Source of the DNA: Anthoceros angustus
Lineage: Eukaryota > Plantae > Anthocerotophyta
NCBI GenBank assembly: GCA_010909165.1
Contig: VJWM01000068.1
Location: forward strand, 1,054,001 to 1,118,000
Reading direction: 5' to 3'
DNA: 64,000 nucleotides
The translations under genes were made by a program, and so were the position numbers. Of this stretch, positions 34,914 to 63,182 are shown one piece after another (position 1 is the stretch's first letter; every line of letters starts with the position of its first letter). The notes beneath the pieces are model-generated. The model was not told the origin of the DNA, ran no database searches, and worked only from the letters and a program-made list of their open reading frames with translations.

Positions 34914-35209
34914 CGGTTTCCCACTCGCCTTAGAAAGTCCCTCGGGAGGTAAAACTTCAGCAGAAGCCTTCATATGCCGCCAACGTCTCAACTATTCATA
35001 TGAATCCATGTTGACCCACATACAAATACAAGCTAGCCATACATTTATAGAAGCTAACCTGCTTGGGTGTTGGGTTTTCGTTCATTCCGAGCTCAGAAAA
35101 AGAAGAAGAAGAATTTGATTTAAGTCCTCTAAGGCTCTCTATGGAATACCGATATGGTTATGGAATATCGATATGTATGGAATACCGATCTGGTATGGAA
35201 TATCGATCT

Positions 35210-38200
35210 GGTCACGCGGCATCACAGAAAGTCCCGCTGCATACGGCGGAACTATTTCGGCATATCATGCATGACCTCATCGGTTGAGGCTGCGGCCCCC
35301 CGGTGTCCCGATATCGTCAACCTACCCCATGATGCACGAAAAGATTTCACGATACACATAAACTTTTCTTCTCTCGGGTTTAGGGTTGCGTTTAGGTCTT
35401 TTGCCTCGCCGCACCATTGCGGCACGCAATATGCCATCTCTGGTCACGCAGCATCCACAATTTGTTAGGGTTGTTAGCGGTTGCGTTGCCTGACCACCGT
35501 TGCAATTGCATTTGCGGTAGTCATCGTCATGTTTGCGGCGTGAACAATGTGTTTGCCCTTACGCATTGCAAGGCGCAGTGGGCACCGGCTTGCATATGGT
35601 GGCTGCAACGTTCATAGGCCTGCTGCCTATTGGGGGTGCAGTTTCACATAGCACTAACTATCCCGAAACAAGCTTGTACCAGAAGGACCAAGAGAAGGGC
35701 TTCCATGAAAATAGTCGCACATACAAGGCTTGCACCTTAAAGCTGCAGTGCACAAGCGATTCAAAGGCCTCTTGGACTACATAATGTGATCTGTCACGCC
35801 CACGACGTGGCTTGACTGCGTCCGTTCGAGGTACTTTGCTGCCTCATGCACTCCGCACAATGTCTGTGCAGTGCAGTACATATGGGAGGAAGTCCATGCC
35901 CTCCAAGCCCTTTGCATAGGCATTGTCCCTCGTGACATGCAACAACCCTAAACAAGAAAACATGTCATCGTTGTCAACACTAGGCGCTGTGCCGCACATA
36001 AAAGTTTTGCCCCACGACGACCTGTGGTGGCCGCGGGCACGTATTATAATGTGACGTGAAGTATCTAAAAGATCTTTGTGGCATATTTCCGTAGTGTACA
36101 CCCAAAAAGAAAGTCACACACTCCGCGTGATCGGATCGGTATTCCATAGATCCGGGTCACGGCATCCACAATTTGTTAGGGTTGTGGATGTAAAGAAATA
36201 GTCTCGCGCACGGCGGAACTATTTCGGTATGTGGAACAATTTCAGATGTCGCCCATGATTTGCGGCCGACATCGCCAACCTACCGATGATGCACACAAAG
36301 TTTTCACGATACACATAAACTTTTCTTCTCTCGGGTTTAGCTATTAGGGTCATTTTGCAATTCCGTGCTATTGCGGCATGCATCGGGCGTCAGTAGAGCG
36401 GTTGCGCTTGCACCGGCACCGCTTGCAATTGTGTTGCGCTACCACGCTTGCAATTGCATTTGCGCCGCACTCATCGTTTGTGTTTGTGGCATGGCTGAAA
36501 GTGCTTGTTTGCGCAAAGTCACAGTTGTTTGGCACTTTCAGCATACATAGCACTAAGTACTCAAACAAGCTTATACCGGAAGGACCAACACAAGAAGGGC
36601 TTCCATGAAAACACTCGCATATACAAGGCTTGCACCCAAAAAGCTCGATTGCACAAGTGTAAAGTTCAAAGGCCTCTTGGACCACATAACGATCCCGCTC
36701 CACGCGGTGCCTCCCCACTCTGCACTCGCACAATGTCTTGGCGCTTGTTTAATATGTACGGGTGATCCGAACCCTAAAACCCTAAATACTAGGCTAACAT
36801 TGTGTCATAGAAATATTTGCCTTCTAGAACCTCAAGTTGATGTGGTATATATTATACACCGCATTGCATGGCATCTCAAGATGCCGTGGCATATTTCCGT
36901 AGTGTACACCCAAAAACAAAGTCACACGCACGGTCGGCGTATGGAATACCGATCTGGTATGGAATATCGATCGTCACGCGGCATCACGTAAAGTCCCGCT
37001 GTTGGGAACTATTTCGCATATCATGCATGACCTCATCGGTTGAGGCTCGGCCCCGGTGTCCGATATCGTCAACCTACGATGATGCACAAAGTTTTCACGA
37101 TACATAGAAACTTTTTGTTCTCTCGGGTTTAGGGTTGCGTTTAGGTCTTTTGCCTCCGCACCATTGCGTGCAATATGCCATCTACGGTCACGCATCCACA
37201 TTTTTAGGGTTGTTAGCGGTTGCGTTAGCCTTACCGCTTGCAATTGCATTTCGTTGTAGTCATCGTCGTGTTTGCGGTGAATATGTTTGCCCTTACGTGC
37301 AAGGCTGCGATGTTGCTTGGTTGCATCTGCTGCAGCGTTCATAGGCCTGCATTATTGGGGTGCCATAGCACTAACTATCCCGAAACAAGCTTGTACGGAA
37401 GGACCAACAGAAGGGCTTCCATGAAAATAGTCGCACATACAAGGCTTGCACCTTAAAGCTGCAGTGCACAAGCGATTCAAAGGCCTCTTGGACTACATAA
37501 TGCGGGGTGATCCCTCGCCGGCTTGACTGCGTCCGTTCTTTGAGGTACTGGTCGTGCCTCCCCCCTGCTCATGCACTCCCTGCACAATGTCGTCAGTGCC
37601 AGGTGCAGGCGGTACATATGGGGAGGAAGTCCATGCCCTCCAAGCCCTTTGCATAGGCATTGTCCCTCGTGACATGCAGTTCAACCCTAAACAAGAAAAC
37701 ATGTGCATGACATCGAGACACTAGGCGTGTCATAAAAGTTTTGCCCCACGACGAACCTCTGGTGATGTGGCACGTATTATACGTATATTGTACGTAAGTA
37801 TCTAAAAGATGCTGTGGCATATTTCCGTAGTGTACACCCAAAAAAAAGAAAGTCACACACACACTCCCGTGTGATCAGATCGGTATTCCATAGATCTGGT
37901 CACGCGGCATCCACATTTTTTTAGGGTTGTGGACAGAAAGAAATAGTCTCGTCGCATACGGCGGAACTATTTCGGTATGTGGAACAATTTCGGTATGTCA
38001 CGCATGACCCCGGTGTACCGATATCGTCAACCTACCCGATGATGCACACAAAGTTTTCACGATACATAGAAACTTTTGTTCTCTCGGGTTTAGCGTTGCG
38101 TATAGGGTCATTTGCAATTCCGTGCTATTGCGGCATGCATCTGGGCGTCGTATGTGAGCGGTTGCGTTTGCACCGCGCTTACCGTTTGCAATTGTGTTTG

Positions 38201-40420
38201 TGCCGCGCTTACCGCTTGCAATTGCATTTGCGCTGCACTCATCGTTTGTGTTTGTGGCATGGCTGAGTGCGTTTGCCCTTGCGTGCAAAGCTGCAGTGTT
38301 TGGCACTTGCTGCATACATAGCACTAAGTACCCTGAAACAAGCTTATACCAGAAGGACCAACACAAGAAGGGCTTCCATGAAAACACTCGCACATATACA
38401 AGGCTTGCACCCAAAAAGCTGCGGTGCACAAGTGTAAAGTTCAAAGGCCTCTTGGACCACATAGCGATCCTCCACGCCACGCTGCCTCCCCTGCACTCAC
38501 ACAATGTCTTGGCCGCTTGTTTAACATGTACGTGTGGTGATCCGAACCCTAAAACCCTAAATACTAGGCTAACATTGTGTCATAGAAAATATTTGCCCCG
38601 CCTAGGAACCTACCGAAGTTGATGTGGTATATATTATACACCCATGCGTAAAGTCTCAAAGATGCCGTGGCATATTTAAAGGCGTACACCCAAAAAGAAA
38701 GTCACACGCACGCGAAGCCGGTGTATGGAATACCGATCCTGCGTCACGGGAGTGTGTGTGACTTTCTTTTTCGGTGGCTACGAGGATATGCCACGGAATC
38801 TTCGATACTCGTATAATACACGTATACGTGCCACATCGCCTTCACGGTTCGACGGAAAACATTCTATCACACGCTCATCCCCCCGTTCCGATGGTGTCAC
38901 ATGATCTTTTTGATGACGGTGTTAGGGTTTTCATCGTCTACACACAAACATGGCGGGGCAACACATACACACATGAACTTTTTGTTCGCGGTATGGCCAG
39001 CGTTCGGCACCGCAAATCCTCCGCTTACACATGCCGCCACTATATATGCAGGAAGGAGGATGTGGGAGCAACGCTTTGTGTGCTTGCCTACTAACATGCT
39101 TGTGTTGTGCGCTTGGATGTATGGGGCGACTGAAAGATGATCGTAACTTCACCTTTCAAACCGAACATCATGCGAAGGAAACCGGTGCAATGTGCATTAC
39201 AGATCGAACATGCTTCACACACTCCCTCCTCAACCTCATCAAAGGCAATGTCATCGTCCTACAAATCCACTTCGCCCTACGAGACACTGCGAATCGCGCT
39301 GCTCAACCAAAAACATCCGAACATAGTCTGCGCCACACCTCATGGTGGGAGCGCCACAAACAAAAACACCTCCCTACGCCACGCGGAAGAGCCTCAGGTG
39401 CCCTCCATCCTCTTGTGCTCGAACTTGGCTCCTCCTCTGCACTTCGTCACTCGGCCGCCTGCCGTGGAGGGGCCGAATGTCCCTCACCGGACATGGGAGG
39501 TGCACCTGACAGTTATGGCAGCGGCCCCTCGTGAGGTTGGGGAGGCGTGTTCATCCCGACCAATGGGAAGGGGGGGACCCCGGAAGGCGTGGCGGGGACA
39601 AGGAGAGGGTGGTCACCACCAAAGAACCGACTTGCACAGATCGGATCGGTATTCCATGTCACGGTCGCGCGGCATCCATTTTTTAGGGTTGGCATGTCTC
39701 GGTGTGTGGAACAATTTGTGTGTCGCATGGGTGTCGAATATAAATCAACCTACCGGATGCACTAAAGTTTTTTCGATACATAGAAACTTTTGTTCTCTCG
39801 GGTTTAGCGTTCGTATAGGTCATTGCAATTCCGTGCTATTGCGGCATGCATCTGGGCGCCGTATGTGGCGGTTGCGTTGCACCGCTGGTTACATTGTGTT
39901 TGTGCCGCGCTTACCGCTTGCAATTGCATTTGCGCTGCACTCATCGTTTGTGTTTGTGGCATGGCTTAGTGCGTTTGCCCTTGCGTGCAAAGCTGCAGTG
40001 TTTGGCACTTGCTGCATACATAGCACTAAGTACCCTGAAACAAGCTTATACCAGAAGGACCAACACAAGAAGGGCTTCCATGAAAACACTCGCACATATA
40101 CAAGGCTTGCACCCAAAAAAGCCTGCAGTGCACAAGTGTAAAGTTCAAAGGCCTCTTGGACCACATAATGCGATCTGTCCACGCCCAGTGATTACCTCCC
40201 CACACTCTGCACTCGCACAATGTCTTGGCGCTTGTTTAACATGTAATGGTGATCCGAACCTAAAACCTAAATACTAGGCTAACATTGTGTCATAGAAAAT
40301 TTGCCCTTCTAGGAACCTACGAAGTTGATGTGGTATATATTATACACCCATTATGTATCTCAGATGCCGTGGCATATTTGGTGGCGTACACCCAAAAAAA
40401 CAAAGTCACGAAGCCGAGTG
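35210..40420. repeat. Array of five ~0.8-0.9 kb related units (~35210, 36150, 36970, 37895, 39660) containing telo-box-like AAACCCTA/TTTAGGG motifs
   Basis: Shared blocks GTCACGCGGCATC, CAACCTACC.GATGATGCAC, CTCTCGGGTTTAG, TCAAAGGCCTCTTGGAC, GTACACCCAAAAAGAAAGTCACAC. Confidence 0.85.
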
Positions 40421-41300
40421 TATGGAATATCTGCGTCACGGGGTGTGTGGACTTTCTTTTTTGACGCCTTCGAGGATATGCCACGAATCTTCGATACTCA
40501 CATTATAATACTTATGTCGTGCCACATCAACTTCACGCGGGTTCTGTGAAAAACATTCTATCACGTTCATCGGCTGGTGTTGGATGGTGTCATCTGAATC
40601 TTTTTTCATAGCGGTGTTAGGGTTTTCATGGTCTACACACAAACATGGCGGGCAACACATACACACATGAACTTTTGTTCGCGGTATGGCCGCGTTCGCA
40701 GAAGCGCAAATCCTCCGCTTACACATCTTTCACTATATATGCGGAAGGGCGGATGTGGGAGGATCCCCGGTGTGCTTGCCTACTAACATGCTTGCTTGCG
40801 ATTGGATGTATGGGGACTTGACGAGAAGATGATCGTAACTTCACCTTTCAAACCGAACACGCGGGGAAACCATTGCAATGCGAGGCATTACAGATCGAAC
40901 ATGCTTCACACATCCTCCTCAACCTCATCAAAGCAGGGCAATGTCACTGCGTCCTACAAATCCACTTCCGGTCCTACGACACACCGGGCGCATGTTGCCG
41001 TTCAAAAAAAACATCCGAACATAGTCTGCGCTCACACCTCATGGTGGGGCGCGCTCTAAACAAAAAAACACCTCCCTCGCCATCGATCGCGGAAGAGCCT
41101 CGAGCGGGCCCTCCATCCTCTTGTGCTCGAACTTGGCTCCTCCTCTGCAGACTTTCGCCCCTGTCTTTTCTTTGTGGAGGGCGAATCCCTCCGCACCGGA
41201 CATGGGAGGTGCACCGATTTGCCATGGCGGGGCAGTGCAGCATCCACTGTGAGGTTGGGGAGGCGGGTTCATCCCGGCACCAATGGGAAGGGGACCCGAG
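38760..41300. repeat. Two diverged ~0.85 kb copies of a second module (~38760-39630 and ~40430-41300)
   Basis: Shared CTACACACAAACATGGCGG, GATGATCGTAACTTCACCTTTCAAACCGAACA and CCTCCATCCTCTTGTGCTCGAACTTGGCTCCTCCTCTGC. Confidence 0.85.
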
Positions 41301-42018
41301 CTGGAAGGCGTGGCGGGGGCGATTCTTGGGGAGGTGGCATCCACCGCACTTGCACATTGGCCCGATGGCATGGAGGATGCGGCCATTCTTTGCGTTCATG
41401 TATTCCATGAAACCGGCGCGATTTCCAGGCTGCGTTGTCGGCCGATCGTGAGTCATCCATCACTCCCTCCATGTCGGTGCAGTGGACCCTGAGGTTGCGC
41501 ACCTTCTCCACCACTTCAAGAAGGAGGCTGATGGCGCCCGTCATGGCTGCGTCGATTGCAACTGCATTGGACTTCGCCGTTGCTACCATACCTCGGAGCT
41601 CCATTGGAGCTGGATGCCCCACCTTGTTGCGGCCTTGGGCGGTGGCCCCCTCCCCACTGGTGCTGGCCCCATTCACGCCTCTCGGCCGAAGCACCGGGGT
41701 TCGCCCCTCCGGCACTCTCGCCCCTTGCATCTTGGCCTTCGCCCCCAGGCGCCGCCCGGCGCTGGGTCTGCCCCCCATTGGTGCACCCTCTTCCTCTTCC
41801 GGGTGCCCGCCCGGTGCCTCGAGCTCAGCGATGAGCTCGGCCAGCTCTCTCGGCCTTCGCCTCCTCACTCCGCGGCCGCCGTCTCGTTCGATCTTGGCGG
41901 CGCTCCACGTCCTATAGCGGATGCGAAGTTCCGTTTCGTAGATGACCACAGCAGGGCTGGTCTCGTCCACTCCGTCCACACCGCAAACCTCGCGGACATA
42001 TGAGTACGGGCATGGCAA
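41269..42018 (-). CDS. Hypothetical element-borne ORF (249 aa) with a possible coiled-coil end
   Basis: Open 750 nt with protein-like composition (ELAELIAELE, AISLLLEVVEKVRNLRVH). No family recognised, and GC-rich DNA gives long ORFs by chance. Confidence 0.3.
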   Translation of the reverse strand: MPCPYSYVREVCGVDGVDETSPAVVIYETELRIRYRTWSAAKIERDGGRGVRRRRPRELAELIAELEAPGGHPEEEEGAPMGGRPSAGRRLGAKAKMQGARVPEGRTPVLRPRGVNGASTSGEGATAQGRNKVGHPAPMELRGMVATAKSNAVAIDAAMTGAISLLLEVVEKVRNLRVHCTDMEGVMDDSRSADNAAWKSRRFHGIHERKEWPHPPCHRANVQVRWMPPPQESPPPRLPARVPFPLVPG

Positions 42019-43499
42019 AGTTCACCACTTGCAACCCGGCATTACGAGGCATGACAATGAGCGAACCCACCATTGTCAAACACATTGCGAGCGGATTGTG
42101 CGTGGTCACTTACCATCGAGTCTTCCGATTGTTGTCCGGTGGCGCTCCCTCGCCGCCGTTCGCAACCGGTCACGTCTCCTTCGTCGTCCGTGGCGCCTCC
42201 TCTCCCTCCTCGGTTTCGTTCTCCTCCACTCTCACCGGGCGCCCCTTGCAGGCCCGGCACTGGGAGCTTGCCCCACCATCCTCACCGCCTCGTCCCACCT
42301 CCTCCCCCCCCAGACGTCACGAGAAGGAGGCGCAAGGATGCCGGTCCCGTCACGGCATGCGCCTCTGTTTGCACCCTCGCCTTGCGCAACCACATGGGTT
42401 GCGATCCTTTCGCCTTGCGGTAGTTGGTGGTGCAAAGGCGAATGTCGGCTGCGGCTCGAAATGCTGCGGCCCTCGGCGCATGCGGCCGAGCCATCCCCAC
42501 CTGCGCCATTGGCGGGGCATGCGGCGAGCCACCCTCACTGCGGCCATTGGTGGCTGCGATCGGCCGATCCACCCCTTCCCCTACGGGCGTCGGCTGCCGC
42601 GCCGGTCATCCTCCTGCGGCCCTGCTGCATGCGCAACCCGGCTGCGCCGCTGCCCTCGGTGTCTTGCCTTCGACCCCTCATCTGCGGTCCGGGACTTTGG
42701 CTGCATGCAATCGCCCTCTCGCCCTCCGAGGTTTGGGCGGCAGCGTATCCGCTGCCACGGCAACCTTTGTGGGCTGCAAGCAGCGCACCTCTCCGCAGCT
42801 TGTTGGGGGCGCCCCAGGTGGCACGCCACAGGCTGCGGAGGGCTCCACCAAAGCGGCATCGGGATGCGCCCCCTACCATCCGCGACCGAGCCTCACTTTC
42901 TTGCATGCTCGTCCGTGGGCCATCTTCAAGCATTACTGGCAGCCTCGGTGTGGGCTGCGCCTCCGCCTCGCTCCGCTCACGCTGCCGCCGGGCGGGAAGC
43001 GATTGCCCCGCCGCGCCAGCCATTTCCTCATCGTCGCCACCATACAGCGGTGCGCTCCACATGCCCCGGCCGCCATGCCTTCCGGTCGCCTCCCTCCTCG
43101 TCCCGGCCGACATGGGTGTGTCGAGCTCCATGTCTTCCACCTCGCCGCCGCCCATATCGCCTATGCTCGTGAGCTTCCACTTTGAAAAGTGGCACTTGGA
43201 GTTCTTGGTGAAGAGCTGCCCCAACTTGCGCTAAGCGCTCCTGTTATACGTACTTTCAGCTGGCATTTGGCACCCCCAATGCATCACTTCGTTGCCACCA
43301 GGCGACTGTTTGGCGCTTCGCGCCAAGCTGCGGCTCTGCCATTCGATTTCAACACACGCGTTGCGCGCATGTTGCCACTGCGCTTTCGATTGCATGCGGT
43401 TCCAACCTTCTAACTGCGCTAACAGCTTGCTTGGAGTCCGGACAGTCGTTGACCGCTAGTCAACCTACCACTTACCGTCCTTTTCCGATGTGTTCACGC

Positions 43500-46400
43500 C
43501 ATCTATCCATGGCATCTACAGTACTTGCCTTTCCACCTTGCCTATAAATAGGAAGAAAAGTCCTTCTTTGGACCAATGTCACATGTGCATTGCCTATGGA
43601 TGGCATCCACATGGTATGTATGCATGATGGCTGGTTGACATGTGATGCATCGAACATTTGTACCTAGATCTTTGTGCCATGGCACAATCCATGTATGTGC
43701 ACCGTCATGCATGTCGGGAAGGGTACCATGACACATATAAAGGTCACGTGCGATTATAGAGAAGACATAAAATCAAAACCCAAGGAAAAGGTGCCCATGA
43801 CACGGCATCTACGTGACATGGTCACATGCATCACATGTCAACGCATCATGCATACATACCATGTGCATGTGCATCGTGATATATGTTCGACGCGGTACTC
43901 GGCACATACATACGTCAACGAATCTATATAGAAAAGACCTAAAAATCAAAACCCAAGGAAAATGTGCACATGGAAAGCACATGGTATGCATGCATGCAGG
44001 ATGGATGGTTGACATGTGAAGTATGTGAACATGTATACCTAGATGCTGTGTCATGGGCACCTTTTCCATCTATGTGCATCGTGATGCATGTTCGGCAGGG
44101 TACTATGACACATATATAGGTCAGCGCATCTATATTCAAAATACCTAAACACCATAACCCAAGGAAAAAGTCGTTCTTGATTGCATGAATATCAATTGTT
44201 CAAGGCCAAGGACAAGTGGGATTACAAATATACCTAGCTCGCCTACCATCCGATGTGGTGGCACTCCATCAACAGTTCCGGTTTTTTGCCTATATATGTG
44301 GGCTACCCAACCATGGACTACCAACTACACGCTTGCCTATCCACCGCCTATATATGAAGAAACGTCCTTGGCCTTTGGACTCCCATGTGCTGGATGGCAT
44401 GCACATGGTGTGTGTGTTGACATGGTGCATGTGACCTAGCTATGATCTTTGTGTCATGGCACAATCAACCTATGTGCATCGCGATGTTTGTAAGGCCGAT
44501 TACTCGACACATATAGGTCACCGCACCTATATAGAAAATACCGAAATCATAAACCAAGGAAAAGGGCTAGTAGGTTGTTAAGTGCATAAATATCATTTGT
44601 TCAAAGGCCAAGGAGAAGTAGGATTCTACATAGATCAAGTGCCTACCATCGGGTGTGTGGTGCTTCATCGAGAGTCCCGGTGGTTTTGCCTATATATGTG
44701 GGCTACCCAACCTATGATTCTTCGATTGTACATGTTTGTCATAAAGGATAGGCAGCCATACTTTTCTCTTTTCCCTCTTCTCACCTTTGGGAACCGCATT
44801 GTCTAGTGGGAGGCGTGTCCGGTTGTCTTTGTCAATACCTACCTATAATGTCCGCAATGGCGGGTCGCATACCTACTTGTTTCATTCATTTGGTGATTCT
44901 CGGTTTGGTCCAAAGGCCAAGGTCTTCCTTCATTGATTGACATATTGGTGCAAAGGCCAAGGAGTTTTGTTCCCTTCATTGCCAATGTGAAGCTCCAAAG
45001 GCCAATGAGTATTTTCCTTTCATGACGGTCGGGGATGGTCCAAAGGGAAGGCCTTGTCTTATATATAGGCGGCGAGGCGGGATAGGCAAGTACCGTGTTG
45101 GTTGGGAAATGGATTTTCTTACACATGAATCGGACCTTACATTGGACCATTCGTCAATCCGAGTACATTTTAGTCCTTGGCCTTTGGGCGTCAACGAGAA
45201 ATATCATGTCAACTAGTCCTCGGCCTATGGCCCAATGGAAAACAACATGTTGTTTTCGTCATTGGGCCATAAAGGCCGCGAACTAATCTGACATGAAAAA
45301 GCGAAAACACCGTCGTTGTGCTTTGGACCCGACCACTACGAGCGAGCAAATTCGTCGGGGCTTTGGACCGATTACAATTCGGCGGTCTGCCCCTTCCTAC
45401 CGCCATTCCACAACCACTCTTCCACTCGCGATCGCGGCCATTGCTATTATGAGCGGCCCATGCCGCCGCCACCCATGCAAGTTCACGCTATGCCTCCGGT
45501 GATTGCGGCGATCGCAATCAGCACCTCCTTTGGAGGCCATTCCCTGCGCCTCTCCCTCCGTCCGATCGCCGCGCCTCCACCGCGCATTCGAAGGACCTTC
45601 CTCCCACCGCATAAGGCACGGCACGGACGGATGGTGTGCGGCGTGCGAGTGGGCTCACCATCGATGATGCACCAAAGCGCCTTCCCTCCGCATCCGACCG
45701 CGCTGCATCCCGTCTTCCACCACGCGGTCAAACTCCTCGGCGTCATGCCCGGCACCTCACCGGCTGAATGCAATGGCCCATACCCCTTTGTCTCATCGGA
45801 GCACCCCTTTTCGGCCATGACCGACCGCACTTCCATCGCACACTTCTGTTGTCTTCTTCAGTGACGTCCGCCTCGCATCCGATGTACAGCAAAACTTTGA
45901 GCTGTCCACCCCTCGGATTGTCGCGACAACAACCTTGCTCGTGATGCGCACCACCCTCGCGATCGCCATGCGTGCGGTCGCTCCACTGGAAGACCTTCCG
46001 CCTCCAAAACCCCTGCACCTCTTTCCATTTCCCATTGTGATTGTCGGGCGCGGCCGATTGGAACCTCGCGGGGCGCGCCGTTCCGCGCCATTCGACGCGG
46101 CGCCACCGCCAACCCTACGGTTTCCGTATTATTGCGCCCCGACCTTGTTTCTGTCCATTCTCAATTGGTGACGGAAAGCAATTCACGTCGGGAACTGGCC
46201 GTCTGTTCCACAGGGGTGCAGCTGCCTCGATTTTTCGTATCCGGCCATCGCAAACCAAGAAGTGAGTGCGGACAGGCTCAAAGTCTCTTCACATTAGTGC
46301 CCTCTTGTGCGGGGGCCAGGACAAACACAACGAAACCACTTGCGGTCTCTAATGAAGCGGTCCGACTCCGGCCTTTCAAGCGTTCCCATACACGGAGTTC

Positions 46401-49400
46401 ATGCGGATGGCTTCATCGCAGCGTGGCCATCACGAGCTTGAGACATAGGCGGGGCGATGAGTGCGAGGCACGTCCTCGAGGTGCCCAAAATGCGGGAGGA
46501 ACACGACCACCATTGGCCTGCAGAAGTAAACTCATCGGTGATGAAGGTGAGCAGTAGCTCTATCGCCGAATGACATCTCTCGGCGATTTCCGCGAACATT
46601 TCTCTAAAGCTGCGGCGGGCCTCGAATCTCACTCCACGACGCGTCGCCCATCCATGCGTGGCAGTGAAGAACTTGGTGACACTCTCAAACGTGCACTCCC
46701 CTAGACACTCCAACATGGCCCTCTTGTCCAGGCTGTGCACCACATGCGGAACCCCTCTCCCACCCACCCGCCAACGTGCAGGCACTCGGTGAATAAAAGC
46801 TGGTCCTGCACCTTCTTCCGAATGCGCGCCACCTGCCGCCCCAGGACATGCGAGGGCTTCAGGTCGGCCACATGCTTGAAAAATCCGGGGCACATGCGCC
46901 GGACCAGCGGCCGATGAAATCGCAGCCCTGCTCCTCTTATCGCCCAGCGTTTGATTCTTGGAGGATGGCCATGGTGTGGGTGGGTTGTCAACATATCCGT
47001 CTTAAAAGCCCTCTTCAACGTCCTCTGTGCCCGCATCCTTCCACTCCTTGTGCACGCCATCCTTTTGGCTCCCTAGTGCGTCGCGAGTGTGGCAAATGTC
47101 ATGGGACGACTCACCTCAATGCCATTTGCCGGCATGTATACGGTGGCGAAGAACATGGCACAAGGAGGCATCTGCCGTCGTCGGCGCGCACATTTTGCAT
47201 CAATTGCCAAATATCTTACCATGCTTCAGGGGTCGGATGCACTCACATGGTGATGTGGTAATGTGTAACCACCGACACGTTCGAACACGCCGTCCACAAA
47301 TATGGCGACTCCCAGTACTTCGAGCCTCGTGATGCCGTCGTAGGCCGCATCCTGTTCCAACCTCGTGGACTACATCACCATGTCCCGTGCACAGTGCGAT
47401 GCACTCTAAGCGGTGGGAAAGGTCCCCCCTCCCAGCGAAATTGTCGAGCGTTGTTGGCACTCCATGCCCGCCTCAACCCGCAATCACCAATGCGCGTTCG
47501 AACCCCATCGAGGCACCATTGTGCAAATAATGGCATGACTCGCTCACGGAGGGTTAGGATGTCCTCGAATCGCCGCTCCTGCTCCGTTCGACGGCATCTG
47601 AGCCTTCTCGGTCACCGCAAACGCATCGCATGCGGCGCGTCTTCCTCCGCCGCGGAATGCCATAAGCGCCCGCGTCTGCGTCCTTTCTCCGCCTTCCTCG
47701 GTGCATGCTCTGGGCGACCCAAGTGCGGTGGGCTGCGGTGCGATCGGAGCATCTCTCCTCATCCATCGCGAACCTCAAGTTGGTGCTATTCGCGTTATGC
47801 GCAACTCTTCCGTCATGGATCGAAGGTCGTCGTCCATATCCTCGAGAAGGCGGACCAGCCCGGTGGAGGCGCTGCGTCGAAGAACCCACGGATGGTGGCG
47901 ATGTCGAACATTTCCGGCCCGTCCATGCCTTGCACCATCTCGGATGCGAGCCCTTCCCGGTTCGTACTGCGCCCGTCTCCACGATGTTGCAGCCTTGCAA
48001 GCGGCCGCACCCGCATCGGTTTCGCGATCGCCATTCGCCTTCTCGCAAGTGACCCAAAATTTGAAGAAGAACCTCCTCTGGCGATGGCTGCCGATTCACG
48101 CCCCGGCCCGCGCCTTCCCTTCCCACTGCGGTGGTGTGTGCGGAGCTCTTCCACAACTAAAAGGTCCGTTGCCATGCGTTAGAGCCTCTTCCGCTCCGCG
48201 AGGCCTCCATGAGCAGGCGTGCCGCCCCGTCCGCGCCCGGGGACTTCGTCGCCGCCTCCACGAGGCCCTACCGCTGGCGCTTCTGGGCCTTGGGGAGAGG
48301 AAATTGTGCCTCCTCCCACATGTCCCGAGGTCGAGGGTGGGATGCGGCGGGTGCCTCAAGGTCGGGGATGCGGACGGTCGGCGGCGTTGTTGAACTCTCC
48401 TCCCTCGAGGCGCGACCACGACCACCGCGCCGCTCTCCATCCCCCGGTGACATCCACTTCTTCCTCCTCCGGCCAATCGTAAACCTCGAAGGCGCCGCTC
48501 GCTCCTACCTCCGCTGCAGAGGTGTAAATTGCTGTCCGTCCCGGATGTACGGCATTTGCATCGACTGTCGGCTCTGTGTGTCTTGGGGAAATTGGGAGAA
48601 TGTCGCTGGATACCGGACTTGTGTGTGCGGCGGCGGCATCACGGACCACAGCCGGACCCATGCCGGCGAGCTTCGAATAGAGCCTCGCACCCCTCAACAA
48701 TGGGCACACCGTACTTGCGACGGCGTTCCATTGTCGTCGCCCCCATGCACACCGTAAGCTCCACTGCGTGGTCGGCGCGAAGACAACTCGCCGCCTTCTC
48801 CATCTCCCAAGTCGACCTTGGGCAAAGCCTTGTCCGGCGGTACTTGTACCCGAGCGACTTTGTGAACGCGCCTCCGCCATCAAGCGGTGCGCGCTCTTTG
48901 CTTCTTCGGGCCTATACCCGTGATTCGGAGTTGCGTGAATGGGATTGTCCCAACGGCGCCCGCGGCCTCGCTCACTCGCGCGTCTCCATCCTCCCACCGC
49001 GGGCGGATTGCGTAGATGATCCGCCCATTCTCCGCCATATGTGGATGGGCGCACACGCGTTGAACCTCCGGCGGTCCGGCGATGGCGGCTTGGGCGCGGG
49101 GCCGTCATGCGGATATTGGGCATCGGCGCGCCGTGAAGTGCGTGTCGCCGCCGGCCAGCGCAATTACGCCCGGCTCACGCGGTGCGCGGCGCCCGCGATG
49201 GACGCCGCTCCATCCGAGCGGATCGATGACCGCCCATGGGGGCATATTCTTGGCGATCATTGGCGTCTTGCCGTCGTGCGAGCATGTGTGCCATTTCTTC
49301 TCTCTGCCGCCGGTTGTGGTGCCTGCACGTGTCTTCCGAGCGCCATGGTGCACATGTGAAGACCCACACCGCGCCTGTGCCACCCCAACCGTGCGAGCGC

Positions 49401-51970
49401 CTCGATGTGGGACGACGGGCGCATGGAAGGAGATCGATGGCCGGGTCGCAAGCATTGCGCGTGTTGAGTGGGTGCGGAAAGCTGAAATCATATATTCCTC
49501 CGTGTCCCATACGACATAATCTTTGACGCGGCGGCATGTATCTGAGTTCGGTTAGGGAGTGGCCGTCAGCTTGCGTAAGTTTTGGCTCACGATATGCGCT
49601 TCTGCATTGCGACTATGTGGCTGCTTTCAACTCCTTGCCCGCGCCCCCATCTTGCGGATGCTGCGGCTCAACACCCTCATCGCGTTGCCCGCGCATCTTC
49701 GCTCCGCTGGTTTGAGCGGCATGACGCCGGCGTTTGACTTTCCGCTCGGCCGCCAAACATGCGGTATGGTCCCGGCGATCATGGTTCCTTCCGTCACGTG
49801 CGAAGATCGTACATATGTGTCCCAATAACATATTGGGTCCGATATGTTCAAATAAACTATTGGGCGGAAGTGCAATGATGCGCTATCAACGCGCCTCCGA
49901 GCATTTGTGGGACCGCACAATATCGGCGTTGTGGAACAATTCATTGTGTGCTTATTGAAATGCCCTTCTCATCCGATGTCTATGGGCTGCGTTGCATGAG
50001 CGGTCGACCACGTGGTGGGAGGTCTGTTTGGAGGCAGAAAGGCGAGCATTTTGCTGCATGGCCATTGCACAACCATCCGGCTCCTTCCTCGGCCAACATG
50101 CCTTTTAGGCATCCGCCATAATCCACCATCGCTATGCATTAATATCCCTTAGTAGTCCGCGCCATATTCTGCTCTGTACCGGCTCATGAAGTCCATCCCA
50201 TTTTGCTTGCCATAAAATCCGTGAACATGGCCCATCTTGGCTGCCAGACCATTCACTTCATTTTTGATGGCATGGTTGCCCTTGGCCTTCCAGCGCCTCG
50301 TGGTTGGAGATTTGTCAGTCACTCCACATCCGACCCATCCGGGGTCCTCCCCCACCTTACCGGCCCGCTCCGGACAGCGTAGTGCCCGCCCGCGCCATCC
50401 AGCCCGCAGGGAGGCGAGCCGCGGCTGGCAGGCGACCGCCACCCACCCGCACACCCGCACCCCAATGAACCCCACCCCAACCCGCCCGCCAGCCGCCCCA
50501 CCCAACAAACAGCGAAAATGCCGACCCACCATTGCCCAAAATGCCAAATACATAAAATGTATACAATGCGGAATAGTGCAAAATGCCCAAACGCCTAAAT
50601 TTCGCAAATTGCCTAACATTTAAATTCATCAAATTGCAGAAAATGCCATGCATTATGGGAGACAAGTGCAGTTGATGGAGTGATGCGAATGGAGGCATGG
50701 CGGGTTGATGATGAGGTGCAACGGTGCATTGACTATGCGACGACGCGCCCACACTGCACGTTGCACTATGGAGCACTTGAATGCGTTGCGAATGACCCAA
50801 TCTAACACGGTGCACTCCTCGAACTACACGATTGACAATGGATAAAGCATGAGGGTGCATAATCGTTATATATGACATGAACAATGGTCCCTTCATCCAA
50901 GAGCAAAGGAAAAGGTCAAATCAAGTTGGTTGCATGATGCTCCCACGATCCCATATGTCACAAGGAGAAAGAAGAAGTTCGGAGTATGTATGCCTCTTCA
51001 TCCGGAGAAACATGTATAATCAAGAATGAATGGTAGGAAGGCCATATATAGACATGTATAGTGGTCTGTCAGAACACCAAGGAAGCGGGTTGAAACACGT
51101 GCCACCTCTCACCGATGGTAGGCACGTCATGTATTTATCCTACTTTTCCTTGGCCTTGAACAAATGATATTTATGTGCACAACATGCTCGCCTTTTCAAG
51201 ACACGAAGAAGAGATTGCGGTAAGGATGGACCCTTTTCCATGAGCAAACATCTACAATCCAAGTATCAATGGCTATGGTACATATAGACAAAGTGGTCCC
51301 GTGCCAAGCCCAAGGAACAGGTTAAATCACGTGCCACCATGGTAGTACGCAAATCTATTTATAATCATACTTCTCCGGCCTTGAACAAATGATAATTATA
51401 CCGAACAACATACTCGCCTTTTCCTTGGGTTTTATTTATTTTCAATATATATTATGACCTATATATGTGTCATAATCTGAGTCGAACATGCATCACGATG
51501 TACATAGATTGATTGTGCCATGGGAGCATGTAGGTAGACATGTTCACACACATCGCATATCAAGCATGCAACATGACATGCATACCATGTGCATGCCATC
51601 AATGGGCAATGAACATATGATTGGTCCAAGGCCAGGACTTTTCTCCCGACATATAAGCAAGGGATAGAAGGCATAGTGTACAGGGAATCCATGGTTGGGC
51701 ATACATAGGAAAAACCCACAGGGTCTATGTATAATCCTACTTCTCCTTGGCCTTGAATAAATAATGTATATGCACCAACACCATGCTCGCTTTTCCTTGG
51801 GTTATGATTTTAGGTATTTCTATTCTGTGAGACCCATATATGTGTCATAGTCATTCCATAGTACGTGTCAACCGTCCATCATGCATAAAGACCATGGGTG
51901 GGTGGCATGGTGTTCACATCGAGGACATGAGGTTTCCTTGTTAGTGATTGACCTATATAAGTGTCTCTGG
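43500..51970. mobile_element. Nested element with ~1 kb imperfect inverted arms made of ~0.4 kb tandem units (MULE/foldback-like)
   Basis: GCATAAATATCATTTGTTCAAAGGCCAAGGAGAAGTAGGAT (~44585) is the reverse complement of blocks at ~51135 and ~51735; ~43500-43600 pairs with ~51600-51700. Exact ends not resolved. Confidence 0.6.
46400..47330 (-). pseudogene. Possible degenerate MULE-like transposase core
   Basis: Fragments VAIFVDGVF..GGYTL, YLAIDAK...CAMFF, FKHVADLKPSHV (compare DLKPSTFFVDD at ~29700) and RAMLECLGECTFESV, spread over different frames. Confidence 0.4.
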
Positions 51971-54749
51971 TGAAAAACACTGACATGGGCCGCAAGATGG
52001 AGTCATGCAAATGAAATGTAGGTTAGGTGGCCGTCAAAGTGTCGGGTTTGGTGCATGGAAATGAAATCAGTGAAAGTGGTGGGGACAACACGCAAAGCAT
52101 AAGCTCATTCCATTCGTAAATATTCATGGTGTCATGAAAATGTTGCGGGCATACGTTTGGTCAAATGGTTGACAAACACGGGTTTGTAGCCCAATTCCTT
52201 GAGAATGAAAGGAGTTCGTCCATCATCCAGTGATTTGGGTGTGAACAATGTTTCTCCACCGACTTTATGGAGTCGGGCGAAAGGAGCAGACCGTGCCGGC
52301 GTTGGCGGGGAGGCGGGGGTAGGGAGCCTCGGAGGATGCATCCCACCGATTGGATGCAGTCGTGCGCATCCCACTAGTTCGGATGCAGTGGTGGGATGGG
52401 CGAGGACCAGCACAGTGGGTTTGAAATAGGATTCTGGGGTTGAGCGACGTGCCCACCGCGGTGGTCTCGTCCCAACGTGCGAGAAGGAATAGGGAAGGCC
52501 GCGGTGGGCTGGAAGGAAAGCAGCGTGCGCATTAGTGGAAGGAAGCGCGGCGGTGGCGGGTAGGTGCGAAAGGGTCGCCGGCCGTGCGTGTGGAGGATGA
52601 GGAACCCAAGATCGGGCGGAGCGGGCGGCCCAGTGGGTTGGTGAACTCGTGGCGGTTGAAATTGGGAAGCGGCAGTGTAGCTCCACATCTTGTAGATGAC
52701 TGGCAAATCACGGTGATGCGCATGTTGTAGTCAGCCAAGCCGGGAAGGAAGGGGCGGAGGAATGGGAGATGCAAAGCTCAGTACATTCTGCGTGGCCTAT
52801 GGTTCCCATCAACTATTGGGCTGTCAGGTTCTTGGCATTTGTGGAGGACCATCAAAGCGATGTCTGCGCATAGAGGGCTATCGAGAAACTTGCCGCCTCG
52901 ACTGCCGGCGAGGGCGGACCGGATGGAGTGGCGGTGGACAAATTCTGCGAGAGGTCTACGGTGGAGTGCCACATTTTCATGCACCAAGTGTTCGACGGTT
53001 GGCCGTCGGAATGGAAGAGGTGGGAAAGGGAGCTGCCGGCGTGGGCGACCTTAGGATTTGGTTTTCCAGTGCACGCATCAAGTGCCACCTTGTGGAGAGG
53101 TGGCCTAATGAGGTATTATGAATTGGTTGATTTCGTGCGGTATGGAGAAATGGAATGGAATGAGAAGAATGGGCGTTGTTCGAGGATATCAACCCGGAGA
53201 ACCATGTTATACGTACTTGGCGGGGATGCGAGTGCCGGGCGGTGGAAGGAGAACCAAGTGCCGGCCGTGAAGGCACAAAATGTAAGGGTGGTTGCGGTTG
53301 GGAATGGGAGTGATGGTGCGAGCACGCTTATGATGAGCGTGGGGAGTACCATAGGTTCCGCGGTTCATGTAATTCGTTGGAACTGCGGATGGCGATTTTC
53401 GGCTGCGAGGCGGCTGCACGGCGGCCGCGGGCGTCGATAGGTGCAAGCGCTCGAGTTGCGGATCGTTGTAAGGTGCGGTGCGTGCGCGATGCACATTCAA
53501 TGTTTCTGAAAATGCACGTTGCGAAATTTGAGTACGCGTAGCATGGCATGTGGCACGCGGATCGAAGTGCACGTGCGCGATGGCACGCAATGCGAAAATG
53601 CGAAATTTGAGTGGCGCGGTAGCGCATCGTGCAACCGCCTGCGGAAGGTGCGATGACTCACATGTTGGCATATACTGCGGCGCGCGGTCACGGGATGCGA
53701 TGGGAGGCGCGGAGTAAAGGCGTCGGTGGGGATCTCGGGCGATCCGAGGCCGCAGTGGACCTATGATTCCGTGCACAATGAAAGCATGCCATGATGGTGC
53801 GTTGAAGCGAGGCGGTGGAGGAGGAGGGGCGGCGCGAGGAAGGAGCAATCGCGGAGGAGGAGGGGAGGCGAGGGTGAGGAGGCCATGGACATCCGTGCGA
53901 TCGTCCGAGAAGGTGGAGTGGCTGGCGCGGATCCGGCGCACCTTGGGAGGCGTTGTGGATCGATCTGCGGATGTGCACCTGAAGTGGAGACAAGGAGGTC
54001 GGCCCGTGCGCGATCGCATCTGCGTCGGTCACCCATGAATTCTCAAACCTCGCTTGATTGATTGCACTGGATTGCACATTGCGACCATGCTTGGTTGGCT
54101 TTCGAAGGGCGTCACTCGCCCACAACGACCGGCGGTACAAGCGGTGCTATGTGGCCTCTGCGGAAATGTAAGCATTTTGCGGTCGGCATCTGTCAGCCTC
54201 GCCTTGTGTGTTTGCGGTGAGTATGATCCATTCGAGTTTGCGCGGCACGGAGGCGTGGGCGATGGGCGCGTCGTCCCCGCGGCGATCATGCGGGGCGGCG
54301 AGTGATGGTGCGCGCCCGGGCCGGGCAGCGATGGGAGAAGTGGAGGCGGCGGCGGCGACATGCGCAATGTTGTGCGGCCGACATGAGGTTGGGCGGGATG
54401 TGGGGCTTGGAGCACGGTTTTGTATGCCGTCCGGAAGGAGCAACGCCGTCCTCGCCGGAAGGCTCCCTCGAGAAGGACTGCGGATGCAGACGGGCGGTGG
54501 CGCGGGGAGGCCGTGGAAGCGGCGGTGGCTCGCGGAATCTCGGGGCGTGGAGCCGGTGTGGGAGTGGGAGAGCCCGGCAAATCCACTCCACGACTCGCAT
54601 GTCGAGCGTACATGGCCGGAGGAGGCGAGAAATGTGTACGGCTGGTCCGGGAAATGGGTACTCATGGTATTGGAGGTTCGCATTGTCCGCCATGCACAAA
54701 GATTTCATTTTTCGTGGAGAAGGCAGATTGTGGCCTGACCATTGAGAAG

Positions 54750-55930
54750 TGGGTTGGAGGTGGGTGAAGGTGCCTCGTGGGCGGGTCATGACGCATGGGG
54801 CGCGGAATCTTTGGAGCAGCAAGAATTGGCATGGCGTTGGTGCCGTTGTGGATGCAATTCGCGAAGACCCGAGGATTGCAATGCGTGCGACCATCGAGAT
54901 AGGCGCGGTGACCATGCTCTGTGAGAAGTCAATGGAGGCTTCGTGTGGGAGTTTTATCAGAGAAGGACGCCTTTTTCGGCAATCACCGTCGTTCGAAAGT
55001 GGAGGAGGCGGTTGGATGGCACCCTATGGTCGCAGTGAGGGAATGATAGCGATGGATGTTACGCAATCGGAGAAGTGGAGTTGGAAGCTAGTGGTGAGGC
55101 GGTTGGGCGGAATGGGACCGTCACATGTGCTGTGGGCCAGACCCAGGCGGCGGTGGAATATGCGGTGAGGCTCGTTTCTCGGCGGTTGGGACATTGAGCA
55201 TCCTCCCGGAGTTGGATCAACACAATTTTTGTGGGCGCGTCATTGCCGTTATTCGTGTGGGGCGGAGCATTTCATATGTTACTTGGACTTCGAGCGAAGG
55301 GGTATTCCAAACACTGGAAGCATGTGACGATCATCGGGGCATGCCACACAATGGGGGTCGACGGGATACGCCCGATAGCTGGAAGATCCCATGCCTTTTG
55401 TTAGGGGGCCCGTCGTGGAACCCCGCATTGAGGTAAGGCGGCGTTACATTTGCGGGTTTGCCGCGAGCGGCTGAAGAATGAACGGGAGGCGGAGGCCATC
55501 GACATTTGTCGATGGGTAGAACATGTGCATGGAGCGAGAAGTGTGTATGCATGCGGCGAGCGCCCATTCTAGATTGTTCACGGACGGCGTGTTTGTGTGC
55601 GTCGTTGGTTTGGAAGTGTTATGTGGGTGCACGCACTTCAAACAATGAATCAAGCGATACCAAAAGTGACGTGATAGCTACGGGCGCTTTCGACGAACTT
55701 CTGCGGGCGATCTACCTCTGCGGATCGGTGCGGTGTGCAAACCCCGGCCGCAAGCGCTTCAAGCTCGGACCGTCCGTGGAACACAAATCGGAGTGGGCCC
55801 TAACACGGTCGAGCCGCTTTGTCTGAAACCCTTGGCTGCGGACATGCCATTACTCGGGCGGAAAGTGTTAGGAGGATCGAAATCGGCGCCGGTACATTCG
55901 AGAGGTGCATTTGGGGTTTGAAGGAGGAAG
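54750..55930 (+). pseudogene. Degenerate HECT-like E3 ubiquitin ligase domain
   Basis: Motifs in HECT order across frames: GDHAL.EVNGGFVWEFY (~54910-54960), RLFTDGVFVCVVGLEVLCG (~55571-55628), ELLRAIYLCGS / FCGRSTS (~55700), LRTCH (~55840), terminal LGFEG (~55910). Confidence 0.5.
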
Positions 55931-56299
55931 GCGCATGGGCAAGGAAAAGCGCTCCCGAGGGTAGGCGCGGTCAGGAGGTGTTGAGGCCACCGAGTCTCCA
56001 CCTTGGCCATCACGTGGGGCAAAAAGCAGTGAAGGGTGCCCATGGGGCCAGCGCTGCGGCCTTCGAGCAGGCGGAAGAAGGAGGAAGATGGTGGGCGGTG
56101 CGCCCGGCCGAGGCTGCATCAGAGGTCATGGCGGAAGCCCATCATCATGGACGGTGAAAACTTGAGGCAATTCTGCGAGGAGGTGGGGATGAGGGCTGGA
56201 AGGTGGAGATGAAGGGATGCATAGGAGGCGGGTGCGCGCACACCATAAGCGTATGATTTGGCGGTGCGGCACTTGCAGCGGGGAGACCATTGAAAGGCC

Positions 56300-57200
56300 T
56301 ACCGGCGGAGCTAGGCTGCGGCAGGCAGTGACGAGGCTCACGCCGGCTGCGGCATGGCGGTGTATGGGAGGTTGTCCGTGGAGGAGGTGTGCAGTGCCAC
56401 GCACACACCCATCCGCAGCGTGAAGCAGGAATCTGATTCGTGCGGCGGGCTGGCTGGATGGAATCGAAATCCCAAGGAGGCGGGTCACGGAGGCTGCGTT
56501 TTGATGCCGGAGCACATGTACGGCAGTCGGCGGCGCATCCGCGTCGACCAATGCGACACCCATGTACATGTGGCATATGGATTGTAAGTGCGTGATGCGA
56601 GGCATGCGATGTTCGCGGTTGGCGTTGCGGGGAGAAGTGATTGCGAGTTGACGCAATCGGTGGGTTGTTGCCTGGTTTTCTTATGACAAGATGTACCAAT
56701 TCTACTTGAGTGCGGGGCCATAGATGGGGCAACCCATTCGTCCCACAGTTGGTCTGGAGGATAACAAGCGGGGACGGCGATTTTCAACGCCTATGTGGAA
56801 GCGGTGAGGAAGTTTGGGCATCCGCGGATTGTCGGACTACGCGAGCACAATAAGCGGATATGAAGCGAGGCCAAGGGCACATGGAAGCAACTTCATCCGC
56901 CCCTCATGCACAACCGGTAAAAGTTAGGTGCTTGGTCTCGTTTTCCTTATGCCTGTGTGGTGGTGAAGTCGATGAATGCGGGATTATTGCGGAGGATTGA
57001 GCATTTGGCGGTCCTTGGGAGAAGTGGGCATTCCTCTACAAGGGTACATGATGGATATGGTGAGGAGCGTGAGCGGACATCACCAACCACAGCACATCCA
57101 TTCACCGTGACCTTCATGCCCACGATGAGGCGGAGCTCGGCGTTGGAGGCGGTATGGAATAGGCACCGGTGCGGAAGATCGGGCGGCCAGCGAGACATTC
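56300..57200 (+). mobile_element. Degenerate IS3-like DDE integrase-core transposase with introns
   Basis: Motifs in order: GIEIPRRRVTEA, NATPMYMWHMD|gtaagt (56571-56584), GAIDGATH (56714), LEDNKR / TAIFNAYVEAVRKFGHPRI, SDYA (56832), MHN (56906), RIEHL (56993), TFMPTMRR...WNRHR (57150). These fit the consensus GPN.LWH.D, HGAIDG.SR, AV..FG.P.RVRSD, HN.RIE.LW, WN.H. Confidence 0.7.
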
Positions 57201-57739
57201 CGGCCATGTGCTGCTATCGCATTCAAGAAGAAGGTCGACTACAAGGGTGGGTGCGACCACCGCATATGGGGGAGTGAGGAGGCGATGGCGAGGAGTTCGA
57301 TGTGGGTGGCCCTCGGTATGCACAAAGCGTGGCCCCGAGATGCCACCACTCGTGACATAAATTGCGGCGGTGAGCTGACTGTACTGTCCATTTATTTTAT
57401 GCATTGTGGAGGCGAGGCGCATCGGCGCCATTGTGCGAGCACGAGGCCCGAATCGTATGGGCCCTTCTGTGGGTTGTCGAGGCTGCGGATGGCGAGGACA
57501 ATGCATATGCAAAGGGATTGCGGGACATGGACTTCCTCCCGGACATGTATCGGTGCACATGGCACTAACAACACTCTGCGGGGAGTGCGAGCACGAGGCG
57601 CATTGCCCACCTCCACGGTGGGCGGTGAAGCCACCGTGGGCGTGGGCGGCCATCACCTGCTGGTCTATGGTGCAGGTGTGAGGCGTGTGGCCCAGTTGCA
57701 GCCTTAGGGAGTGAGCTAGGTGTGTTGGAGAAAATTGAT

Positions 57740-58300
57740 TTGTCGCTCACCATGACACAGGAGGCGGTGACATTGTCGCTCACCATGACACAGGAGGCGG
57801 TGACAATTTGGATTTGTTTGTTACGGCGTTTTGAGAGTTGAGCCCAGTGGTGGCTTTGTTGTGGTGGAATGTAAAGGGGTTGTGTGAAGATGGTGTGCGC
57901 TTCTTGCTGTATGTTGGCCTTGTCTGGCCTTTGGATGGGCTGCGATAACCCGGTAGTGCAGCGTACATAGGCGCTGCGCTACTCGAGCACAAGGGCTATG
58001 CTGCGAGGCAGCGGGCACTTGTGCCCTCCCGAAAAATGGTGTCTTCTGCGAGGCATGGCTGGCCCCTTGTGCGCCTGACGCTTTGGATGGGTGCAATAGT
58101 AGCGGGCGTACATAGGCGCTGCCTTCTCGAGCACAAGGGCTGTATGCTGCGAGCGGCATACAGCCCTATCTCCGAAAAATAGTGTGCGCTGCGCGAGCTG
58201 TATGGCTGGCCTTGCGCCTGACGCTGGATGGGCGATAGCCGGTAGCGCGAGGCGCTGGCGCCTCGAGCTGGAGGCACAGCTGTATGCTGCGAGCAGCGAG
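57740..58300. repeat. Subterminal repeats of the large element: ~31-bp duplication (~57740-57805) and about three ~130-160 bp units
   Basis: TTGTCGCTCACCATGACACAGGAGGCGGTGACA twice; TATGCTGCGAG...TGGCTGGCC...GCGCCTGACGCT repeated. Confidence 0.75.
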
Positions 58301-59329
58301 GCATGCCCTGTCTCCCTCCTCACGCTATCTCCTCACGCCCGAGCCCTAAAACCAAAACATTGTGTGTGACAACCACAAAAGATTCTACACGTACACCACA
58401 TGCTTAGTGACGAGATCGGGACACGAGGGTGCACCGACCGATGTCGTCAAGTGGCACCGAGAGTTTTCCGCCAGTATGCGAAAACTTTTTGGTCACAATG
58501 GAAAAAAACCCTAAAGGGCTTCCTGACGAGATCGGTATTCCATACGAGTGACCAGATCGGTATTCCATAGTTCGCTGCCACTTTAAGGTCATGCCAATAT
58601 CCATCTATGGCCAGCCTTACTTCTTTTGTTTTGACAGCCGCAAGGTCCAATGTTATTGCCAGGTGCTTGGACCGATGCCCTTGCGAGATGCTCGATTCGT
58701 GAACTGCGTCACTTCACGATCTCCATCGGGGCGGGTGCCTTGAGCATTCTGCGGCCGATCCACCAACAGGTCCGCCTCCTTCGCCAGCAGCATCACGTTG
58801 GCGACTCCTTCCAGAACGACTATGACCCCCCGGCTCCCCACGTCGGGCTGGATATCAACAGCCTCATATCCACGGCCACTGGGGAAGCCAGCGCTTTCGT
58901 CACAGAAGACCTCTTTTCTCCGCAGAAGGTGACCTTCTGGGTGGATTACGACGTCGACAGTCCCTGCCGGTGTCTGCTGCTAAGACGCCCGCCCTGAGAT
59001 CTCAGGCTAAGCTTCTCTTCTCCTACGCGCCTTTCGATTCGTCAAGCTTCATCAACCCGTCCTCGCATGTGGGATTCTCGGCTTCCACTGGAGGTTATAC
59101 GGAGTTGCATTTCGTCTACTCCTGGTCCTTCAGGACGTTCTTCTGACGAACCATCTTTCCTTTCCATGTCTAAGTGACATCGTGTGTTCGAAGCGAGTAG
59201 TAGCCTTGGCCAGTTTTTTGGCCACTGTTTCAAGGTGGAAATGCGCCCAGAGTAGAGTGCGGACGAGAGAGACGTAGAGAGTAATGTAGACTACGTGGAA
59301 GGAGATGGTGGATGTATTGACAAAGGAAC

Positions 59330-61058: not shown

Positions 61059-63182
<2,124 letters not shown>

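Follow-up and report, generated by a model that had tools for sequence, protein, structure and literature searches.

The present study asks whether a 23-kb interval in the genome of Anthoceros angustus is a single giant DNA transposon and, if a transposon lies there, to which superfamily it belongs. The interval, 35140-58569, lies in a stretch of 64,000 nucleotides (assembly GCA_010909165.1, contig VJWM01000068.1, positions 1,054,001 to 1,118,000), referred to here as the window, and all positions given are those of the window. An original prediction, made from the letters alone, had read the interval as one cargo-carrying element mobilised by an IS3-like integrase-core transposase, of a kind little described in land plants. 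We somewhat favor the answer that the interval is a locus of an IS3EU/GingerRoot-type DNA transposon, with a genuine pair of inverted termini at its limits. The observations behind this answer are the tips, the inverted arms, an excess of the terminal motif, the absence of family matches, and a signature of sequencing error in the repeat DNA; a single mobile unit of 23 kb is unproven, and mobility of the whole interval would be a further step.

The sequence TATGGAATACCGAT begins at 35140 and its reverse complement terminates at 58569, exactly where inverted end motifs had been predicted. From the third copy of this motif at the left, a 22-nt near-perfect terminal inverted repeat (TIR), TATGGAATACCGATCTGGTCAC, is common to the left end and to the reverse complement of the right end, and past it a degenerate inverted homology continues for ~250 bp, with 162 of 202 aligned positions identical. 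The inverted arms scored 50.5 compared with 7.4±2.7 for shuffles, which is ~16 standard deviations higher. Patches of inverted homology recur further inside, at 35719-35928 with the reverse complement of 57725-57496 (65% identity) and at 37561-37665 with 57598-57496 (80% identity). Because the TIR, the ~250-bp arm homology, and the inner patches all align inversely, the outer ends can credibly be paired, their inverted arms reaching ~1 kb at most. The terminal motif, allowing at most 2 mismatches, occurred 12 times in the window, compared with 0.29 copies expected from shuffles. It forms arrays at both outer ends (four tandem copies at 35140-35207 and two at 58531-58569), with further internal copies at 36135(-), 36940(+), 36958(+), 37879(-), 38724(+), and 39645(-) and degenerate copies at 40421(+) and 41399-41409(-). 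The termini, TATGG... at 35140 and ...CCATA at 58569, have the TA..TA form of IS3EU/GingerRoot, and the inverted repeats attain the ~100-150 bp known for that superfamily, although the arms here exceed the described length and are more degenerate.

Just inside the right arm is a probable remnant of a DDE transposase of GingerRoot type, an identity that is unproven and that we infer from sequence similarity, as we do its membership in the superfamily. The original prediction had described an intron-containing reading frame at this position with four ordered motifs. All four were present on the + strand, WHMD (56571), GAIDG (56714), SDY (56832), and RIEH (56993), but in alternating frames, and a continuous reading requires at least 4-6 frame changes and crosses several stops within 400 nt; a GT..AG intron is possible near 56916-56968. 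Judging by the alignment, WHMD is probably not the catalytic block; the block immediately before the start of the aligned GingerRoot sequence is WFSYD, near 56670. The conserved blocks are collinear, with plausible spacing, in the order WFSYD-KMYQFYLSAG / GAIDGATH / TAIFNAYVEAVRKFGHPRIV / SDY / RRIE-AF..EK..YKGT.W, where the AF..EK..YKGT.W block is reached from RRIE via a 1-nt shift. With the 115-aa DDE sequence Sl-GR-005 printed in the GingerRoot paper as query, the best tblastn match in the whole window was at 56714-56833 (E 0.25). A purpose-written frameshift-aware Smith-Waterman alignment, run on both strands in 1-kb bins (n=126), ranked 56.7-57.05 kb first among all bins at frameshift penalties of 6, 8, and 10. 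At a penalty of 6 the real score was 90 and shuffled queries scored 60.4±5.1 (maximum 79), none of 300 reaching the real score; at a penalty of 8 the real score was 68 and shuffled queries scored 53.0±4.8, with 3/202 reaching it. In a full protein search, the 118-aa piece at 56921-57274 had P0001 as its sole match, which was rejected as a false positive because it is a 689-aa translated satellite with a ~57-aa tandem repeat, and its E of 2e-11 sums ten weak matches. Word-index protein searches with the GingerRoot DDE sequence and with the read-through gave no match, a result made uninformative by the length filter.

The first description of GingerRoot elements was from Selaginella lepidophylla, with two mosses also shown to contain them; the plants from which they are reported are lycophytes and bryophytes (Cerbin et al. 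2019, PMC6839031). They group with Repbase IS3EU with 99% bootstrap support, and the two have been merged as IS3EU/GingerRoot (Kojima 2023, PMC10045372). The claim that such an element would be little described in land plants was accordingly lost, GingerRoot having been known from Selaginella and mosses since 2019 (PMC6839031) and the merger dating from 2023 (PMC10045372). GingerRoot elements have TIRs of 100-150 bp that carry TA..TA tips, and are flanked by a 6-bp target-site duplication (TSD); the intact ones are 3.9-12.9 kb long, the search for them allowed up to 30 kb between TIRs, and capture of gene fragments with loss of the transposase is frequent, as are unpaired TIRs (PMC6839031). 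The locus resembles them in its TA..TA tips, its long TIRs, the apparent DDE integrase-core transposase with the best window match of Sl-GR-005 at 56.7-57.05 kb, and the presence of many copies without a working transposase. It differs in being 23.4 kb as assembled rather than 3.9-12.9 kb, in tips made of short units repeated 2-4 times, in inverted homology that is degenerate yet reaches ~1 kb, in hexamers only 4/6 identical where a 6-bp TSD is usual, in the lack of any recognised captured gene fragment, and in a remnant too broken or noisy for Pfam. TA..TA termini are a constant feature of complete IS3EU families, and 6-bp TSDs a usual one (PMC10045372). These termini are common to the locus and to complete IS3EU families, most described families of which, in contrast, come from animals and fungi. 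No paralogous empty site was found within the window, and neither the 22-nt TIR nor any GingerRoot relative turned up in metagenome scans.

Each end opens with TA and bears 2-4 tandem 18-bp units, each consisting of the core TATGGAATACC followed by GATCTGGTCAC, which are presumed transposase-binding sites, before running on into the degenerate inverted arms. If the locus is of this type, a DDE transposase with an RNase-H-fold integrase core would bind the tip repeats, cleave at the TA tips, and integrate with a stagger of 6 bp. The body would be composite, with non-autonomous units of the family of ~0.8-1.0 kb stacked tip to tip rather than cargo, the stack being partly doubled through assembly or through very recent duplication, and the remainder would comprise an 8.4-kb block bounded by inverted repeats together with GC-rich DNA without a recognisable gene. 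In the interior, the long open reading frames (ORFs) at 41.9-43.2 kb overlap across several frames. Inverted arrays of sub-repeats at 43481-44792 and 50949-51912 flank 6.2 kb to give a block of 8.4 kb in total, GC-rich in its interior, and the block is probably a nested or foldback-like element. The GC skew shifts sharply at 52000-58000 to +0.24 to +0.32, the remaining window being about zero or negative. For 52000-58600, Pfam was run on all stop-to-stop pieces of 45 aa or longer from both strands, and for 38000-52000 on those of 70 aa or longer; it gave only weak, sub-threshold, unrelated matches (best E 0.011). Among these pieces there was no integrase, transposase, or HECT match, no match to rve, RVT, or RNase H on either strand, and no DNA polymerase or other Polinton gene; a HECT-like E3 ligase relic at 54750-57200 is therefore unsupported. 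Because the interior scans gave no family match, no cargo gene is demonstrated, and sequence noise would hide one too. The picture of a single 23-kb cargo-carrying element therefore did not survive: no cargo gene was found, ~3.5 kb is error-like tandem duplication, ~8.4 kb is a separate inverted-repeat block, and units of ~1 kb with the same tips lie within.

Several observations weigh against an IS3EU/GingerRoot-type element bounded by the outer ends. First is the imperfect TSD. The hexamers adjoining the outer ends, GCTCTC at the left and GTTCGC at the right, are located where they had been predicted but are not identical, agreeing at 4/6 positions, for which the calculated chance probability is ~4% for one pair; as a partial match they also speak in favor of the reading. 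Flank repeats of 2, 3, 8, or 9 bp were absent at the outer ends. GATCTG, which follows the internal tip at 37892, matches GCTCTC as well as GTTCGC does, and therefore the TSD fails to discriminate between end pairings. Secondly, the internal ~1-kb units have the same tips, and the outer ends may come from different elements; because the motif recurs internally, the outer pair is one of several possible pairings. Thirdly, the alignment of the remnant was not significant at a frameshift penalty of 12, where the real score was 53, shuffled queries scored 48.4±4.2, and 34/220 reached the real score, so that significance is confined to cheap frameshifts. The frameshift-aware search of the right-end frame, which the original prediction had proposed, thus returned the expected locus as its top bin with Sl-GR-005 and no shuffle in 300 at a penalty of 6, but lost that distinction under the strict penalty. 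Finally, Pfam PF24764 (rva_4), which recognises Sl-GR-005 (E 2.2e-24), missed the window pieces and also X-joined read-throughs of 58, 125, and 168 aa. Of the IS3EU-like identity, what stands is the TA..TA tips, the long degenerate arms, and a remnant most similar to GingerRoot; a PF24764 match is missing.

The arrangement of the left 6.3 kb bears on these pairings. It is made of units of 0.8-1.0 kb split by single terminal cores of alternating orientation, in the order +35140, X, -36148, Y, +36940, X', -37892, Y', +38724, Z, -39658, Y'', +40421, Z', -41409. Units of the X and Y types are homologous, with 63-72% identity, and each internal junction has one 11-bp core between near-palindromic flanks. 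Self-comparison identified two head-to-tail duplications here, 35175-36954/36939-38738 and 37972-39597/39699-41318, both 83% identical. An alternative explanation, possible but doubtful, could be that several distinct members of the family are clustered in the interval, with small non-autonomous units at the left (X at 35140-36148, Z at 38724-39658, and Y units, piled together), a left-truncated autonomous copy to which only the end at 58569 belongs, and a further element and unrelated DNA filling the middle. This would account for eight tips of alternating orientation within 6.3 kb, for the homology of X and Y units, for a TSD match of the outer pair that is no better than that of 35140 paired with 37892, and for the independent inverted-repeat block at 43481-51912, and it would be consistent with GingerRoot genomes being rich in unpaired TIRs, of which there are 287 in S. 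lepidophylla (PMC6839031). It would not account for the observation that long arm homology (250 bp to ~1 kb) with the 35140/36940 ends is found only at 58569, the internal (-) tips matching over ~25 nt, and no matching pair of 6-bp flanks was found for any of the internal ~1-kb units. The Y-type units also contain two adjacent plant telomere-type repeats (CCCTAAA), at 36761-36813, 38536-38588, and 40246-40298, and the left-type subterminal regions contain GGGTTTAGGGTT.

Bacterial elements of the IS3-family type (IS911, IS2, IS30) form abutted-end junctions and tandem dimers. By analogy, the way in which an internal right end directly abuts a left-type end may recall circle junctions or insertion targeted to inverted repeats; in contrast, each junction here keeps one 11-bp core, and half of the array is perhaps an assembly duplicate. 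There is a slim chance that the concatemer at 35140-41410, in which units of ~0.9 kb occur in either orientation with the single core between near-palindromic flanks, is the trace left in the genome by intermediates with abutted ends, similar to circle junctions, or by insertion directed to ends already present. If so, eukaryotic IS3EU/GingerRoot would have kept the way in which bacterial IS3-family elements join their ends, and such joining might explain how elements of 20-28 kb build up in the genome.

It is unlikely that the interval is a TIR element belonging to a different superfamily or to an unclassified one, in which case the DDE likeness to GingerRoot would arise from unconstrained hopping between frames in noisy, GC-rich DNA, with tips that are coincidental. 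This would be consistent with the absence of a Pfam integrase-core match even for read-throughs, with the non-significant alignment under the strict frameshift penalty, and with the imperfect TSD, but it would not account for a remnant locus that was the top-scoring bin of the window at all penalties tried and whose score at a penalty of 6 was reached by 0/300 shuffles. Nor would it fit tips that are neither CACTA nor TG..CA, flanks without repeats of 2, 3, 8, or 9 bp, or an interval in which no other transposase family was found. Ginger1, Ginger2/TDD, and Polinton/Maverick share an integrase-type DDE core with the probable remnant, and Ginger2 and Polinton make 6-bp TSDs. Ginger termini are TG..CA and Polinton termini AG..TC (PMC6839031). 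The TA..TA termini here led to rejection of Ginger1 and Ginger2 and likewise differ from those of Polinton, whose genes were not found in the scanned pieces. CACTA and LTR integrases are among the best matches that the original prediction had named as fatal to it. CACTA (En/Spm) elements have CACTA termini and a 3-bp TSD; this family was rejected, as the ends here open TATGG and the flanks CTC and GTT do not form a 3-bp repeat. A remnant of a long terminal repeat (LTR) retrotransposon integrase was also rejected, with ends that are inverted rather than direct and without a match to rve, RVT, or RNase H among the scanned pieces.

How far the sequence itself can be read depends on the assembly. 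Across the 64-kb window there are 8 exact head-to-tail duplications, six of them outside the locus: 1675-4927/4926-8150, 6078-8756/8748-11419, 9853-12522/12530-15147, 16596-18739/18731-20787, 21613-22851/22843-24058, and 61092-61352/61336-61596. Most of these six differ between copies chiefly through small indels. Gap events and mismatches between tandem copies numbered 66 and 22, 45 and 17, and 111 and 90, with a ratio of transitions to transversions of ~1, whereas in the TFIIF-alpha paralogs of the window, which are true paralogs, mismatches to gaps are ~4:1. Such indel-dominated differences are the mark of long-read errors left uncorrected in repeat DNA. The copies may be unmerged overlaps, assembler loops via a shared 15-mer, or very recent duplications. 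The worst tandem pairs have ~1 indel per 30-35 bp per copy and the frame of the remnant breaks ~every 70 nt; because the tandem copies show such indel density, the frame breaks cannot be read as biological decay. The prediction that this copy is dead or poorly polished was thus borne out in its second half, as the repeat DNA is unpolished, and because of the long-read error signature dead is indistinguishable from unpolished. By contrast, unique genes nearby are clean, with alpha-tubulin exons having open frames of 170 aa. That assembly artefacts (unmerged overlaps, or loops via the tip 15-mer) account for most of the size and odd internal architecture, the real element being much shorter and simpler, is very unlikely, since, for all that the eight duplications, the gap-rich copies, and a duplication junction sitting in the shared motif TATGGAATACCGATC point that way, the error-like head-to-tail duplication within the interval amounts to ~3.5 kb, and deleting the duplicated copies removes just that and leaves the ends, arms, 8.4-kb block, and DDE remnant in place beside clean unique genes.

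Read as an IS3EU/GingerRoot-type locus, the interval would be a further large copy, in a land plant outside the seed plants, of a superfamily that has seldom been studied, and two implications follow. First is that the giant copy here would be a composite of family units, nested repeats, and assembly noise rather than a carrier of genes. Secondly, broken transposon reading frames in this assembly should not be taken as biological decay. Coordinates of the features are collected in Table 1.

Table 1. Features of the interval and its immediate flanks, in window positions.
Feature	Position	Strand	Remark
Left flanking hexamer GCTCTC, candidate TSD copy	35134..35139	.	4/6 match to right hexamer
Left terminus, 4 tandem 18-bp units each opening TATGGAATAYC	35140..35212	+	
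Left inverted arm	35140..35928	+	homologous to reverse complement of 57496-58569
Two head-to-tail copies of 1764-bp unit (X+Y), 83% identical	35175..38738	+	111 gap events vs 90 mismatches
Internal terminal motif, right tip of unit X	36135..36148	-	followed directly by tip-less left-type end
Two internal terminal motifs	36940..36971	+	within second copy of tandem duplication
Internal terminal motif	37879..37892	-	copy of 36135 motif
Second head-to-tail pair (37972-39597/39699-41318), 83% identical	37972..41318	+	degenerate tips 40421, 41399-41409
Internal terminal motif, start of unit Z	38724..38737	+	followed by inverted right-type subterminal sequence
Internal terminal motif with CCATG ending, end of unit Z	39645..39658	-	
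GC-rich stretch (59% GC), 38-bp repeats, overlapping long ORFs	41410..43480	.	no family match
Block bounded by inverted arrays of ~200-400-bp sub-repeats	43481..51912	.	no family match
G-rich stretch	51913..56650	.	no family match on either strand; GC skew +0.24 to +0.32
Probable DDE integrase-core-type transposase domain remnant	56652..57060	+	read over 2-3 frames, interrupted by stops; small intron possible near 56916-56968
Tandem repeats within right arm	57740..58232	.	33 bp x2 at 57740-57805; 143 bp x1.9 at 57961-58232
Right terminus and extended TIR	58269..58569	-	terminal motifs at 58531-58544 and 58556-58569
Right flanking hexamer GTTCGC	58570..58575	.	

The interval sits between two TFIIF-alpha paralogs on the (-) strand, at 32395-34801 and 59294-60364, which are ~70-80% identical at the DNA level, the left copy being clearly recognised by Pfam TFIIF_alpha. 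The tandem arrays at 4.6-13.6 kb and 22.3-24.2 kb likewise contain TFIIF-like fragments. To the left of the element, at 29580-29909 (-), is a weak match to a MULE transposase domain, a fragment only (E 0.001), and just to the right of the element are a legume-lectin domain fragment at 58650-58994 (+) (E 3e-7) and, further on, the alpha-tubulin gene at 61654-62751.

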